A stretch of DNA of 64,000 nucleotides from assembly GCA_038496445.1 (NCBI GenBank), contig JALMLS010000250.1, forward strand, positions 8,683 to 72,682, written 5' to 3'. Every line of letters begins with the position of its first letter. Positions within the stretch are counted from its first letter, which is position 1. The position numbers were made by a program, and so were the translations under genes. The DNA comes from Trichosphaerium sp. ATCC 40318. Taxonomy: Eukaryota > Protista > Tubulinea. Under the pieces are notes generated by a model, which ran no database searches, was not told the origin of the DNA, and worked only from the letters and a program-made list of their open reading frames with translations. This document shows, piece after piece, positions 14,886 to 53,826 of this stretch.

Positions 14886-15548
14886 CTAAATTCAAATGTA
14901 ACAAAAAACACTACCAAACTTTTTATTCTTCCTTGAGTACAACAAAAATGGTTGGAGAATGGTTCTTTTACTGGCAGTGCAGCAACATACCAGGTCTACT
15001 AGTTACACCTTTCAGGGTGCCTAGCAGTCCACTTTATACCATTTTCTGTGGTACAAAGTTGGAGCGCTAGCATAGGCAGTGTATTACGTACACTAACGTT
15101 TAACGTTAAGAAACGTGTAACACATTATGGTACTAAAGTAACAATAATGCATCTACCATCTTGAGAGCTTTACAGACCCATCAAATGGCATTTATCCTAT
15201 CCAAGTAGTAATACCTAGGTAAGGATACCAGAACCCATCATCAATGACAATACCAACCACTAGTAACAAGGTGTAGAGTCGTTTTAGTATTGCAAAAAAT
15301 TGGCAATAAGAAAAAGTGGTAATAATGCTTTCTCTCAGAGAATCGTTTTGGATGGGCGTCTTAATTAAAACACGTTGAGGCCAGTTGATAACAAACTATT
15401 CGTTTATTTCCTTAGCGTTTACAAATAGAACGTCACGAATACGTACCAAATGAGGGTACCGTCGCGATACCTACCTCTCTAGGTATTAATGCTACGCAAA
15501 ATGTCGAGAATATCTTTGAATTACCAGTACCAAGCAATACTACTTACC

Positions 15549-16648
15549 ATGGGATCTTCAGAGCCTATTGATACCAGTGATGCTTTTTTAATACCTGAAA
15601 TGATGCTCGCAGTAATAGAGACTTGTGATTTTCCAACACAACTAATACTGCGTCTGGTAAGCGTCAAGACAAAAGTATTGGTAACAACGTCGCTTTCATT
15701 CAAAAAGGTAACAAAACTATTTTAAACAGCTCAAACCGCTGCGAATATCACTTAAACTGCGTAAAGGCAAGACGACAAGGCGCTAGACGCCTCAGAAAAG
15801 AGTACCTACTATTAGAGAAACAAAACGACGTCATACTCCATATCAACTTAATATCTCACACCAGAAAATGGGAAATAACATTTAAAGGACCGGTACTTAT
15901 GCAACCACGTGATAAGCCGTTTTTACTTACTTTGAAACAAGAAAGAATCACCTTATGTTGGAGGCTACTTTGTTGTCGAATTTAAGTTCCCAGTACGTCT
16001 CTTAACACGTGATAATGAATGTGTTGTAATCTTTTAAGGGTCTTCAACACCTTAAAGCAGTGTAAACACTTCTACTGTACCCAGTGATTACTTGCTTTAT
16101 CATTCAACCCAAAAGCAACTTTTTTTACCTTTTTTGAACAATTTGTACTTCAGCTAATTATAGCTCAGTATTAGCATCAAACAAAAGTTTTGTACTAACA
16201 AAATATAGAAAGGGTATCCTTTTAAACCTCCAGTGTGTACAATGAAAACAAAGACTTACCATCCTATGGTATGTTGATTTTTATATTATCCACAAAAAAA
16301 AAACCAAACCAACAGCATCACAACTTTTATGTTTGTGTTCAAACCTTCTATTGTAGGTGAGTGAACTAGGATACTTATCATTTAAATTAATTCATTATAA
16401 TTGGTCTCCTGCAGTTAAAGTTTCAAACGTAATTGAGTTTATTCTCACAGAAATGGCCAATCTTGATAGTGGTACTTTTTTGATAAAAGTTCATATCCCT
16501 CAAATTGTTCTGTACCCTAACACATTGCTCTATAGAAACAATTCTTAACGTAGAAGCACACCAGCTTCTGATATCGAACAGAGAACAGTTTAAGAGAAAG
16601 GCAGCTGATTGGACACTGCTGTATGCATCAACCCCACCTCCTGTGTAA
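15549..16648 (+). CDS. F-box-like + inactive ubiquitin-conjugating (UEV) fusion protein, paralog 1
   Basis: Exon 1 LIPEMMLAVIETCDFPTQLILRLVSVKTKVLV (F-box-like); then RRLRKEY...WEITFKGPKESPYVGGYFVVEFKFPKGYPFKPP...TKTYHPMVSELGYLSFKLIHYNWSP...NREQFKRKAADWT; Ser at the catalytic Cys position. Alternative start at 15489. Confidence 0.8.
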
Positions 16649-46210: not shown

Positions 46211-48784
46211 ATGAGTGGGTACAAGTTGCGAGAGTTACAACAGATGTTCGCAGGGAGAATAGCAGACGACGTAATTTCTCTCATCTACGATGCCAACAGG
46301 CGGGATTTCGAACAAACGCTAAATTCGTTGTTACAAATGGATGTAAACACGCCAGAAAAGGCGCCTGACCCTTCGTTATCTCTGAGAGATAATTCAGAGC
46401 GGGACCTTGCACAACAGCCTTCAATGAGCAGTCGAACATCTCTGAATACTCTCCCTCGGCCAGATATAACGTACGCGACATAGTTACAGTGTTTTACAGA
46501 TGAATGAACCTCAATTCACTCAACCAGTTCCTATAGCAGAGCATCACGTAATACACCGCAAGAACCGCTTGTTGCAGTTGATTACATGGAAATAGATTCG
46601 CCAGGCCCTTCAAGTCCTGTTTCATCGCCAACACGACAGCGAACAATACTAGATCTCGTATGGAATATTTATTTACGCGTTTTGTAGCTTCTCAAAACGT
46701 CAAGGCGTTTGACAAAATTAAAAGAAAGTTATTTGTTTTTTTCTTATTTATCCCTTTAGACAACCTCTCCAAACATAACATCAAACCGTCGTTATCGACC
46801 TGCGTTTGTACCAGATTCACCTATTTGGCCATCAACTCGTGATAATTCTTCAGAAGACGCCTCCAGGAGGTCTAGTAGATCTAGTAGGCGGTCGTTAGTT
46901 TCAGACTCACCAAGCTTGGATTTTTCGGTTCTCTCTGATGACAGTTCTTCAGAAGAGGACGGTGATTATGTACCACCAAGCCCAGAATCAGTTGCAGTAC
47001 GCTCACTTAAAAAACTTTTTTTATTTTGGTTTTTCTTTCTGTTGAGCTTATTGCCTTTGGCTCTTTTTAACCGTTAGTATAAATCACGTGGTAGTCCTAT
47101 TATTTTATAGTGGTTACTGGTGGTTGTATTGACTTGAGGCGGGATTAAACCGCGCCAAAAGTTTCGTTAACATTCTCAGAAAACACCGCTTTATTACACG
47201 TGTATTAACTTAACAATCACTCGTAAACCCTGTTTTTTTATGGTGAATAACACTTTACAAGTTGCTCGTATTTTAATGCAAATACAATTCGTTCACTGCC
47301 TCTTTTGGATGTAGCTACTTTGAAAGAATTATTTTTTGTTTTTTTTTTGTTTTTGTTTTCTCGTTATTTAACTTTTACCAAAAACAGGATGAAACATATG
47401 CACGTGAATTACAAGCCAAATTATACAGAGAAGAAATAGCTGCTCTTGATGATGAATTAACGTCAAGCCTTTCGTTTATACCAAGAAGGACAGAGAATCA
47501 AACAAGGTCTCCTGGAAGGTCTCCTGGTGGAACTTACTTCGAGAGGAGAAGAGCAGCAATAGGAAATAATGAAAGGGCAAGAAGAGAAGCAACAAATCGA
47601 TCAAGAAGAGCAGCAAATCACTCGAGAAGAAGAGAAACAAATGATAGAAGTCCAACAACAAACTTTTTATCTCGGTTAGCTTTTATTTTTAATTAGCCTT
47701 AACAGCTATGCAACTCCCTCTAACATTCTTTTTTAGGAGCATGGATGTTACAAGACCATCTAGACGACGTAATTCACGAGGAGAGAGACGAAGGCCAAGT
47801 GGTACGGGATTTTAAAATGCTGAAAGCAATTTTATGTAAGATTGATTTTATATTTAGAGGGGAACGCTAGTGAAGGTGTTCCAGATGACTCAACTCGATC
47901 TAGAAGAGAAGAAACAGATTCTGAAATCGCACGTAGAGTACAGGAAGCCCAAGATTTTGAGTTAGCAAGGCAATTGGCTAGAGTGAGTTAACAATTAAAT
48001 AACAATAAAAAATTCACTCACTTTTTTCTTATAGCTAGAAAATGATGATGATGGCCCATATGTACCATCTTTTCGACGTAGGAGACCAAGACGTTCAAGG
48101 TAATAATATGAGTTTAGTGGACGTATTTCTTGGTTTAACAGTTGTAGTGATGAAAGGCTTGGCGGTTTCACGTTTGAAGATGCTACGACGTCTACAGAGG
48201 CAGCTGATGCTCTTCGCGATTTAATAAGTGGAAGAACTAGAAGATCAAACCCTTATCCACCTTCAAATGAAGGTAGGCGTTACAGAGTGATGCCTAGAGC
48301 AGTCCCTAGACATTTTAGATTACGTGATCGTGGATTGAGACTGGGTGGAATGGGTGGAATGGGTGGATTGGGTGGACTTGGTGGAGCAGATTCTTACGAG
48401 GTATGATTCTGTTATTTTTGTTTTTTCTATTCTGTTTCAAAAGTGGGAATCGGTTTTGGCTCATATTTATCTGTTTAGGATCTGCTTGCTCTTGGAGCAA
48501 GACTAGGAAATGTCAATGTTGGTGTATCAACAGAAACGTTATCTGCGTTACCAACGTTTAATTATGCAGGCGAGAAATTTCCAGAGATGACGTATGTTGG
48601 TTAAACATTTTATTGATTTGCTCATATTTTCTTTAGTTGTTCTATCTGTCTTGCCGAGTATGATACAGGCGAAAAACTAAGGAGATTACCTTGTTTACAT
48701 ATATTTCATTGTGATTGTATTGATCCTTGGTTAAAGGATCATAAGGAGTGTCCGATATGTAAAAACGTCGTAAAAATATCATAG
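46211..48784 (+). CDS. RING-H2 E3 ubiquitin ligase with N-terminal CUE domain and MIU/UIM-like motifs
   Basis: CUE-like [23 protein letters not shown]; [27 protein letters not shown]; [14 protein letters not shown]; [29 protein letters not shown]. Confidence 0.88.
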
Positions 48785-49224: not shown

Positions 49225-50843
49225 ATGTCTAAATACGCAGGTAAGAGGAAGGAAGTGAAGGAAATAAACGACTTACAACGATTAGAACACCATGAAGACC
49301 TAAAACTTGTTCAAAAGAAAGCAAAGCAGTTTGCTGATATGCTGCGAGCATCAAAACACTCGGTAGCGTACACAGGTACGCAAACAATATAATTTTGATC
49401 CATTTTTAACTTTTTTCCCTAGGAGCTGGTATTTCTACCTCCGCAAACGTCCCTGACTACAGAGGGCCTACAGGAATATGGACGCAAAAAGAACAAGGCA
49501 TAAAGCCCAAACTAGAAGGTTTTATGGACGAAGCTTGTCCTACATTCGGCCATATGGCACTTATGGAGATGCTGAAGCCGTAAGTATTAATTTTCGGAGA
49601 TTGCACCGCAGCGTCTTGGTTTTTTTTGACAAGTTTTAAAGGAATCACCTCAGCCATATTGTCTCGACAAATGTTGATTGTTTACATCTGAGAAGCGGTG
49701 CACCTAGATCTAAAGTATCTGAAATACATGGTAATGTATTCAAGTACGTACTTTTTAAAGACCTAAAGATAGTGAATTCGTACTAAGTGAACACTTAGGG
49801 AAGTGTGCGCTGATTGCGGAGCTGAATATTTCCGACACTTTGATGTCCTTGGACGTGTTAAAAATAGACAAACTGGAAGACTGTGTGAAAAACGTGGCTG
49901 TAAAGGTGTACTTAAGGATTGCATCATTAACTTCGGTGAAGTACGTATACGTATACTGCTAGAGCACGTTGAAGTCAAGTATTAACATGTATACCTTAGT
50001 TCCTAAGTTCAACTGAACATTCAAATGCAGTAAAAAACTCAAAAAAAGCTGACTTGGCAATTGTAATGGGCACAAGTATGCGTGTTTCATCAGCTGCAGA
50101 GTATCCTCTAGCGTAAGGACTTAAATTCATATCAAAAAAGTTACTTATTGATCGTGTTTAGCGTTGCAAAAAGAGGTGGACAACTTGTCATTATTAATCT
50201 TCAAAAAACTCCTTATGACAAGAAAGCAACACTTCGTGTTTGGGCAAAAACAGATGTATTCCTAGAGATGGTATCAAAAGAGCTTGGTATAGATGTACCA
50301 GCCTACGATATGTCGAAAGATCCAATATTGAGTGTTCCTAAAGAGACTAAAACGCTTAAAATTAAGAAACTATGGAAAGGAGTGACAAAAGAAGATGTCA
50401 AAGATACTTTTAGTAAACATGGCAAAGTCAAACATGTGTACTACTATGATAGCTATGCATACGTTGTATTTGATAAAGTAGAAAGTGCTGTAAGCGCACT
50501 GGCGTCAATCAATGAGGTACATACTCAGAAAAAAGCAAGAATCTCGCCAACGTCTTTTTTTTTTACTGCTTTTGGTTTTTAACCTCATTTTTTCTCTTAG
50601 GGTGCTGATAAGCTTAAAAATGTAGTTGCAGATTATGCATGTGGTATCGTGAATCCTGATTTTGAGCGAATGAAACAAACAGTATCAACTGTCAGTGGAA
50701 GTTCTATGGCTGATGATGAGCCGTAAGTTTTTACATGTTCTAAATATTTGTTCTTTTTCTAATTTAATCACCATAGACCTCCACCTGCACTTCTAGCTGA
50801 AGTATTGACAAAATTCAATAAAGTCCTGAAACCAGCAAATTGA
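49225..50843 (+). CDS. Class IV sirtuin (SIRT6/7-like) fused to a C-terminal RRM
   Basis: [34 protein letters not shown], Zn ligands [26 protein letters not shown]; [45 protein letters not shown]. Confidence 0.88.
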
Positions 50844-51002: not shown

Positions 51003-51939
51003 TTAACTTGGTGATGGTGGCATAGATGCATGTAACTTTGTCATCTCAGCTGCTTTTTTCATAAATCCTTCTCTATCTTCCTTCAACATTTTGTATACTT
51101 CTGAATTATTGTAGTACTCTACTGCAGTACTTGTTAGCCTAATGAACTTCAAGTATTGTTTCACGTGTTACCATCGTCAAAATTAGTTAGTAGTTCTCGT
51201 ATAGTTTTAACAACATCTACCATCCAAGACACCGGACTCCAATCCTGGTACAGCATCGCTAAATGTGTGCCTCCATGAGCAAACAACTGCGCCTGGTTAG
51301 CTGGAAGTATACGTTAACAAAAGGGGAGGTTACCATTGGATGTATTAGCTTAGTTTTGAATTTTACAAAGGGAGCCTTAAACGGGTAGTTGTCCTAAAAA
51401 CAGAATCATCATTTGCAGAAAATCCGTTGTCTTTTTGTCATTTTTGTCCTTGTGCGTACATTTAATCTAAATATGAGGGTGAAATATCCTTCCTCATATG
51501 GTGTATCTTTCTAGGAGCAGCTTCGTTAGCAAAATAGCTTTCTTTACTTATGTTATTGTAGTACAGGTCCAGGGAACGTTATTTCCCACGTTTTATCCCA
51601 TGTTTGTACGTTAACGTGTAGTTTAGGATCGGTTTGATCACATAACTTATCATACTCCATTTGCAGGCGTTTATTGTACGAAAATTTGCTTCTTATTAAC
51701 CCCTTGAGCGGTTTTATTCATTTTAAAGATAGTTTTATCAAAATAGCCTGCGATTTGCTTACTTTTCTATAAGAAGGCGTTCTCAATACCAGTTCTTTTG
51801 TTCCTACGCTTACTAAGCGTAATGTGAGTTGTGTGGTAAAATCGCATGAGCCAATAATGGCAAACATCATTTCAGGTATTATCAATGGCTCAAAGTCGCT
51901 CTCATAACATTTGTGCTCCATGTGAGAGTGTTTATTCAT
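51003..51939 (-). CDS. F-box-like + inactive ubiquitin-conjugating (UEV) fusion protein, paralog 2
   Basis: IIPEMMFAIIGSCDFTTQLTLRLVSVGTKELV; KRLQMEY...WEITFPGPKDTPYEEGYF..NYPFKAP..TKLIHPMAQLFAHGGTHLAMLYQDWSP...DREGFMKKAAEMT; His at the catalytic Cys position; intron positions match paralog 1. Confidence 0.8.
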
Positions 51940-52382: not shown

Positions 52383-53826
52383 TCATTGAGGCAAAAAGAC
52401 TGGCATCAGTGATTCTACAATAGTTTCGGTCACTTTTGGAATTGAAAACGTGATTCTGATTGTATGTACATCCAAGCTCTCCTCCTCAATCAAAGTCTAC
52501 ACAAAAGAGTATCAAACAATGAAGTTGCAAGCGATTTTGTAGGTGTAGTAAAACGTACAGCTGATTCTAAGAATGCACACAATATAGTCACAAGTTTTTC
52601 ACGCATCAACTTGTTGTGTACTACTACATTGACATTTGTTTCCAACAATGGACTACGTCGATATTAGTAAACAGCCTACTTAAAACAACAATTGACGCAC
52701 TCTACACCGATCAAATAATCGTGGTGCATTGCTTTTCGATCAACTAAAGTTGAGTAATATATCACCACAAATGTTTCTGATCCTACCATTGCTCGTTTCA
52801 TATAGGATTTACTTAAACTTTCCTTTGTATTATATAAGTGCGCCCAAATAGTACGTTGTGCTTTTGCCCACAACTCTTCCGCTGAGAGACGTAAGGGAGT
52901 GAACTTGGTATAAATTACTAGTACCCAAGTTGGAATAGTCCCATTTTATTCCTGAAATTGCATCAACACATCTCGCCTTTACAACTTCCGGTCCAATTTC
53001 ATTATCAGTCCATAATAGTCTAAACTCACCATTATCGAAACTAGGGTACTATTTGAAAGAATAAATACAGAACAGGTTTTGTCTATATGCGTACCATACC
53101 ACAACGTTGAAAGTACTTTGTCGTCATTGATCTACCAAGTTCTGTTGCTAGATATATTACCGTGCCACTTGCTACCGTCTCGGCACAGAAAACACTCTTC
53201 ATGCGCTTGCCGCGCCGTGCCTATAAAAAAGTTTGTTGTTGTACTCAAAGAACACTGTACATCACGATGCAGAATTGCTACAAAGTCGTGTTGCCACTGT
53301 TTTTGTAGACGTCCAAGAATATGAATGACTGTTAAAATTGGTAGTTTACACTCTGGTACATGTTAGTGTAATAACAAGATGTATTAAGCACGTGCTACAA
53401 GGTATGTTCATATCTTCCCATACAATGGGTACGCCATAGTATTCAGCTGCAAACCATAAGCCTCCAGGATCTTCGATACTTGTCATTTCTTCATTTTTCA
53501 TCAAACTCAATATTTTCGGGAGATGCTTTGAATGACTATTTTTGGAGAGTACGTTATTTTGTCGGATGTGTTTTCAAATATTGTCTTTTAATTAAGTAAG
53601 GAGCGCACCTACATTCCTCCAAAAGCGTAGTAGTTGATGAATTATCTTGTAATGATTCAAAATGTACTTTAGACGCGAAAAGAGACGATGGATACGCGTT
53701 TAGGAGTGTTTCTGACAGTGCGAAGGTATAATTACCACATATAAACTGTACTGACGTTTTAGTTGTTGGTACAGATGTACCAGGTGCCTGATTCAATTTT
53801 CTTTTCTTTAGTTGAGGCTCTGACAT
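52383..53826 (-). CDS. NLS-BTB/POZ family gene, copy A
   Basis: MSEPQLKKRKL; KCTD-type BTB F.LSETLLNAYPSSLF...LPKILSLM..LWFAAEYYGV; exon structure shared with the other copies; ends LMPVFLPQ*. Confidence 0.8.

Follow-up and report, generated by a model that had tools for sequence, protein, structure and literature searches.

An F-box-like head joined to a Cys-less E2 fold: a four-gene family in the amoeba Trichosphaerium and its likeness to Drosophila Morgue

Does a gene of the amoeba Trichosphaerium sp. ATCC 40318 that appears to join an F-box to an E2 fold without the catalytic cysteine belong to a maintained family, and what could such a protein do? The gene lies in a stretch of 64,000 nucleotides (hereafter, the window), with about 37% G+C and a dense set of short GT-AG introns. 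The Trichosphaerium sp. assembly comprises 70.87 Mb at 37.69% G+C, with a mean intron of 75 bp and F-box enrichment (PMC10521059). An earlier note, made from the letters of the window alone, had described the gene as the second, diverged F-box–UEV paralog of a gene at 15549 and had regarded the pair as evidence of a maintained family.

The gene, termed B here, occupies 51939-51003 on the minus strand and comprises six exons separated by five GT-AG introns of 41-66 nt each. It starts with an ATG at 51939, preceded by an in-frame TAA two codons upstream, and its open frame encodes 221 aa if exon 5 starts at 51292 or 219 aa if the downstream acceptor at 51286 is used. The features of B and of its paralog in the window, A, are as follows; A′ and C are two further members of the family described below.

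51763..51939, minus strand: exon 1 with the start codon; N-terminal module of 59 aa, open frame
about 51787-51882, minus strand: F-box-like core, residues 20-51 of B, within exon 1
51703..51762, minus strand: intron 1, 60 nt, GTAAGC...AAG, phase 0; same position in A, A′ and C
51565..51702, minus strand: exon 2; GL linker (as in C), UBC helix 1, first strands, GP end
51511..51564, minus strand: intron 2 (54 nt, phase 0), following GP; CTAAC branch point, 15 nt from the 3′ splice site
51460..51510, minus strand: exon 3, 17 aa; PYEEGYF motif of the UBC fold
51394..51459, minus strand: intron 3, 66 nt, phase 0; common to A and A′
51334..51393, minus strand: exon 4, 20 aa, YPFKAP...HPM; Met codon 51336-51334 in place of the HPN Asn
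51287..51333, minus strand: intron 4 in the preferred model, 47 nt; CTAAC branch point, then GCGCAG at the intron end
51172..51286, minus strand: exon 5; former active-site loop and helix 2; UQ_con match; His codon 51265-51263
51122..51171, minus strand: intron 5, 50 nt, phase 1; CTAAC branch point, 12 nt from the 3′ splice site
51003..51121, minus strand: exon 6; C-terminal UBC helices, short Pro-rich end, stop TAA 51005-51003
15549..16648, plus strand: paralog A, 207 aa, six exons at matching positions, Ser at the Cys position, HPM

B matches A at all five introns, in position as well as in phase, which bears out the shared architecture that the earlier note had reported; the four intron sites named there held, but the count is five, the intron between 51460 and 51393 having been omitted. 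The identity between the two proteins, described before as moderate, is 41.5%, and both frames are indeed open, with Pro-rich ends that are short (PPSPS / PPPV). Database, family, and fold searches used single-exon queries, and exons were joined only locally, for the paralog alignment and dN/dS. We consider it very likely that B is an intact gene with an E2 fold.

One junction of this model needed closer attention, as intron 4 has three candidate acceptors. The first (CCAG; intron end 51301, exon start 51300) shifts the frame and leads to a stop after 13 codons, the second (AACCAG directly before the exon; a 41-nt intron to 51293, exon start 51292) adds Ala-Gln, and the third (GCGCAG directly before the exon; exon start 51286) yields the canonical 8+8 spacing exactly. 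A perfect CTAAC branch point lies 37 nt into the intron in the 51286 model, with 10 nt from there to the acceptor. Where family introns show a clear CTAAC, the distance from the branch A to the 3′ splice site is 10-15 nt, and in short family introns with a recognisable branch point the A follows the 5′ site by 37-49 nt; the frame-breaking acceptor (51300) would require a branch point just 20 nt from the 5′ splice site. Because the 51286 model alone fits the family branch-point spacing, the two-residue insertion after HPM claimed for B, which is present only with the AACCAG acceptor, is probably an artefact of acceptor choice. We also considered a splice variant carrying a catalytic Cys and rejected it, the sole nearby Cys frame being the truncated one entered through the first acceptor; no in-frame acceptor that restores Cys at the catalytic position of B was found.

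The state of the active site was as first described. The catalytic position, eight residues before the Trp of WSP, holds His in B (codon 51265-51263) instead of the Ser of A, and HPN is changed to HPM in both genes. Both hallmarks of an active E2, the Cys and HPN, are therefore absent from B. The fold itself was recognisable exon by exon: exon 4 of B aligned to positions 55-73 of Pfam UQ_con (PF00179; 21.5 bits, E 1.8e-4) and exon 5, colinear with it, to positions 78-110 (13.8 bits, E 0.045), and exon 4 of A also matched UQ_con (E 5.7e-4). Each single exon of B falls below the UQ_con gathering score of 27 bits, and the UQ_con genome scan gave 28.9 bits at gene B with frame neighbours included. 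Exon 4 of B had 197 PDB sequence matches, and all 60 of those listed were E2s, aligned at residues ~60-77; exon 6 of A gave weak alignments (E 0.3-1.4) with yeast Ubc1 and Ubc13, in their C-terminal helices. Exons 2 and 5 of B returned nothing meaningful from the PDB with phmmer, and exon 3 of B, even extended to 20 aa, had no Pfam match, being too short on its own. A Cys-less UBC fold in an open frame under constraint, the combination that marks the UEV class, is what B presents.

Using exon 1 of B as the query, we recovered three places in the 70.3-Mb genome: B itself, A, and a third gene, A′, on contig C25 (G000:C25:212133-212888, minus strand). A′ is intact, has the exon layout of A, and shares 94% DNA identity with A over about 1.4 kb, with a flanking context that is otherwise unrelated; it is a gene-sized duplication of A, not a haplotig. 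A fourth member, C (G000:C185:97323-98437, plus strand; six exons, 213 aa), was found through a comparison of E2 intron positions and is newly identified here. Exon 1 of C resembles the A/B head in hhalign (E 2.9e-5), and BLASTP aligned it to the family head (4e-5) along its full length, gap-free and up to the same exon boundary; the linker of C opens with GL, like that of B. A profile built from all four heads found just these four genes in a genome search, which settles the copy count that the earlier note had asked for. None of the four keeps the Cys (A Ser, A′ Ser, B His, C Asp), a spread indicating that the position varies freely.

Member C is the more conservative of the family, A and B being strongly diverged. 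Its exon 2 equivalent covers UQ_con positions 1-37, and its UBC domain keeps HPN, YPFKPP, WSPAL, and PNPDD and has Asp precisely in the place of Cys85. Both A and C retain YPFKPP, WSPA, and the C-terminal helix motifs. Exon 5 of C matched only UBE2D1-3/Ubc4 chains among the 60 PDB matches listed, at about 1e-9, with the Asp aligned to Cys85. C has a one-residue insertion in the HPN-to-Cys loop, and its last intron is of the GC-AG type (donor GCAAGC). It is C that connects the family with UBE2D and makes the F-box link stronger, and for C the exon 5 matches answer in the affirmative the question of a Ubc4/5 derivation: judged by sequence similarity and through this member, the ancestor of the family was a Ubc4/5 (UBE2D)-type E2. 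For B, whose exons either match E2s of several subfamilies to a similar degree or match nothing, UBE2D descent would follow from its homology with C.

An active canonical E2 gene on contig C7, one with no N-terminal extension, likewise carries the phase-0 intron that follows HPN/HPM in the family, and this sharing of an intron with an active E2 gene of the host argues for an endogenous origin of the family. Elsewhere in the genome, a diverged E2-like pair (G000:C15:180593-181182 and G000:C324:16493-17063) has HIN for HPN and keeps the Cys (GQICW); its exon breaks fall at about the same UQ_con positions (~55, ~76) as those of the dead-E2 family. Relatives of the head outside this genome were sought among 1.84 billion representative proteins, viral contigs, and JGI metagenome contigs, and none was found. 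Within these searches, the family is so far known from one species only.

We then asked what the N-terminal module is. It consists of ~45 conserved residues, the most constrained part of the protein, and had been labelled an F-box. That label stood in profile-profile comparison but did not reach the Pfam cut-off. The heads of A and A′ scored 13.4 and 13.2 bits against the Pfam F-box (E 0.075 and 0.087; cut-off 20.5), and the heads of B and C had no match to it (PF00646 / PF12937). A profile of three head sequences was negative against the F-box in hhalign and became positive after C was added. The F-box reference alignment was made from eleven strong F-box domains of the same genome; against it, the four-head profile gave E 8.1e-5 and a probability of 61% over 39 of 47 columns, in the register expected of an F-box (IPE-hh-x-h-I with LPxEil-x-I, and LRLVS with lrl-VC). 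A local rerun of hhalign scored 20.9, as compared with a column-shuffle null of 8.2 +/- 1.9 (maximum 18.6; 0/300 shuffles reached the score) and with 9.1 for a reversed-alignment control. In a language-model Atlas, the heads of B and C lay nearest to F-box clusters (0.90; all ten of the ten best named), which we treat as a lead only. More than 1,400 F-box candidates were counted in the genome, which also encodes Skp1 in several copies, one of them at G000:C137:79701-79844. With moderate profile-profile support and sub-threshold Pfam scores, the head is probably an F-box.

The alternative that survives best is that the head is a lineage-specific helical extension, and that the proteins are free-standing UEVs of the Mms2/UEV1 or AKTIP kind, which would partner an active E2 or bind ubiquitin with no link to SCF. 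Besides the Pfam results, several observations are in its favor. Searching PDB sequences with the head profile yielded no F-box and nothing relevant; the only match of the three-sequence profile among the 1.84 billion representative proteins was a spurious repeat protein; AF2 modeled the head alone with low confidence (pLDDT 58; poor and unusable) as two helices rather than three; and the conserved F-box Trp is an invariant Lys across the family. Foldseek found no PDB match for the head model, and C is without the LP motif. This alternative has to contend, however, with an hhalign match that holds the expected register and that no shuffle equalled, with two diverged heads (B and C) that both fall on Atlas F-box clusters, with a location N-terminal to a binding domain that is the standard F-box layout, and with the highest constraint in the protein (omega about 0.09), as expected of a docking interface. 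We regard a non-F-box head as unlikely, while giving it more weight than the other alternatives considered here, and continue with the F-box reading.

Next, we assessed how the genes have been evolving. Between A and B, synonymous sites are saturated (pS 0.70) and pN/pS is 0.55 (bootstrap 0.44-0.66). By NG86, omega comes to about 0.26 for the protein as a whole, 0.09 for the head core, and 0.30 for the UBC part, all upper bounds given the saturation. The loss of Cys is old, as proposed before: the A-B synonymous sites are saturated, and C is also Cys-less with yet another residue. The young A/A′ pair behaves differently. Its first 45 head residues are identical, and its dN/dS reaches 1.18 over the whole protein and 1.8 within the UBC part, where 19 changes are non-synonymous and 3 synonymous; these values are compatible with neutral evolution, and omega <= 0.3 is rejected (p < 0.001). 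The purifying selection on the fold claimed by the earlier note is thus borne out over the long term between A and B but not in the A/A′ pair.

Could B be a silent or decaying duplicate, for example one spliced at the first AG of intron 4? Its head exon is without a match in the representative protein library, intron 4 offers a frame-breaking acceptor among its three candidates, and A/A′ exemplify neutral drift of family members. Against this, all five introns of B keep GT-AG, 219-221 codons have stayed open despite saturated synonymous sites relative to A, and the frame-breaking acceptor would put the branch point 20 nt, rather than 37-49 nt, from the 5′ splice site. Furthermore, B retains 39 of the 54 residues (72%) common to A and C, and a relative-rate test with C as the outgroup counted 20 A-specific and 15 B-specific changes (p 0.40), with no acceleration of B. 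These balanced rates and retained residues indicate that A and B have been under equal constraint and that B is not a copy that died long ago; we consider decay improbable.

The former active-site surface had been proposed to diversify in the manner of a binding pocket. Its fast change is evident: the stretch from HPM to NLDS has the lowest A-B conservation (4-6 identities per 20 residues, as compared with 14-15 in the N-terminal module), and, lying in exon 5, it holds 9 of the 20 amino-acid differences between A and A′ (p 0.009). Non-synonymous divergence between A and A′ in exon 5 is 0.102, four times the intron value of 0.026 (Fisher p 0.0017), but synonymous divergence is raised there as well (0.079), so that omega is about 1.3 and not significant; the diversification of a binding pocket is indistinguishable here from relaxed constraint. 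The weakest alternative, that the family is a target or tool of conflict, for instance with giant viruses, and that its former active-site surface is under positive selection, could draw on these same exon 5 figures and on the many virus-derived F-box genes of the genome (PMC10521059), but we think it very improbable, as a conversion tract or relaxed constraint accounts equally well for the pattern, the intron positions common to the host E2 argue against viral import, and viral contigs hold no relative.

B had also been placed about 450 bp from the end of a copy in an array of BTB genes. The distance was accurate, in that B begins 443 bp downstream of the last array copy, which is on the same strand and has an open frame ending at 52383, but the BTB label was not confirmed: four array exons had no BTB match in Pfam even at E <= 10. 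The array, tandem and inverted, extends over about 53.1-62.1 kb and contains five to six related genes with first exons 62-72% identical. Array copies are absent from the rest of the window, including the surroundings of A, and from 10-kb stretches on one side each of A′ and C, so that adjacency to the array does not recur at the other members within the flanks examined. The neighborhood of B and the array looks coincidental, and a functional link is unsupported.

Two further observations concern the window. The convergent neighbour of B (50148-50842, plus strand) has an RRM in its last exons (Pfam RRM_1, E 4.7e-8), and we take the part of its frame preceding the RRM to resemble the C-terminal end of a putative sirtuin-type domain. 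An 11-nt palindrome, TCTCTSAGAGA, occurs in two exact copies (15331-15341 and 46379-46389; 0.02 expected by chance), one of them 208 nt upstream of the start codon of A; none lies upstream of B.

What might a protein of this layout do? The head is predicted to dock on Skp1, which would bring the protein into an SCF-type cullin ligase. The dead E2 fold, with no thioester to form, would be unable to carry ubiquitin and may instead work as a binding module, either for ubiquitin or ubiquitin chains or, through its retained YPF and WSP(A/V) loops, for a RING/E3 surface. The protein would then be a Morgue-like receptor or decoy, not an enzyme. This mechanism of Skp1 docking combined with a dead E2 as a binding module is put forward tentatively, as a possibility that we lean somewhat away from. 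The reading as a whole, in which an F-box-like head and a dead UBE2D-derived E2 form an SCF-linked, Morgue-like receptor or decoy, strikes us as evenly poised. It would be a long shot to suppose, further, that amoebae independently invented Morgue-like, SCF-docked pseudo-E2s from a Ubc4/5 gene, as decoys or ubiquitin-chain receptors within cullin ligases, with a former active-site face that changes rapidly in a conflict such as one with the giant viruses that have filled this genome with F-box genes.

Pseudo-enzymes recur in the ubiquitin system and are poorly understood, and a second independent invention, if true, would point to a general logic for a Skp1-docked, non-catalytic E2 surface. 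The family also forms a graded series, from the near-canonical C to the diverged A and B, and offers natural variants (Ser, His, and Asp; HPN/HPM) for biochemistry.

Among known systems, the UBE2D / Ubc4/5 class I E2s share the colinear UBC fold with the amoeba family, and the intron after HPN is common to an active E2 of the genome; the family differs from them in the absence of the Cys from 4/4 members, in the HPM of A, A′, and B, and in its added N-terminal exon. Stand-alone UEVs resemble it in their Cys-less UBC fold. They are ancient and widespread families without an F-box, whereas the amoeba family derives recently, and in this lineage only, from a UBE2D-like gene; the two were set apart by their descriptions. 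Stand-alone UEVs, which include Mms2/UEV1, the TSG101 UEV, and AKTIP/FTS, have a Cys-less UBC fold that binds non-covalently (PMC3787007).

The best functional analogue is Drosophila Morgue, in which an F-box likewise lies N-terminal to a Cys-less E2 fold. To our knowledge, Morgue, whose mechanism is still unclear, is the only characterised protein that combines an F-box with a dead E2. It binds both SkpA and K48-linked polyubiquitin, carries an N-terminal C4 zinc finger (CX2CX12CX2C) and an F-box with five conserved Trp, has an invariant Gly at the Cys position, and occurs in protostome invertebrates only (PMC3787007). In contrast, the heads of A, B, and C are without a zinc finger (exon 1 of B contains just two Cys, with a spacing of 21 residues), none of the four amoeba heads contains a Trp, the Cys position holds Ser, His, or Asp rather than Gly, and the amoeba proteins are about 210-220 aa long, with member C being UBE2D-like. 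Since the defining features of Morgue (the zinc finger, the Gly, the Trp-rich F-box, and the protostome range) are absent, the amoeba family, compared with Morgue by its published description, is probably an analogue of separate origin and not a member. The layout itself was thus already known from Morgue; what is new here is the finding that the array link does not recur, the acceptor analysis of intron 4, the constraint on B like that on A, and member C.
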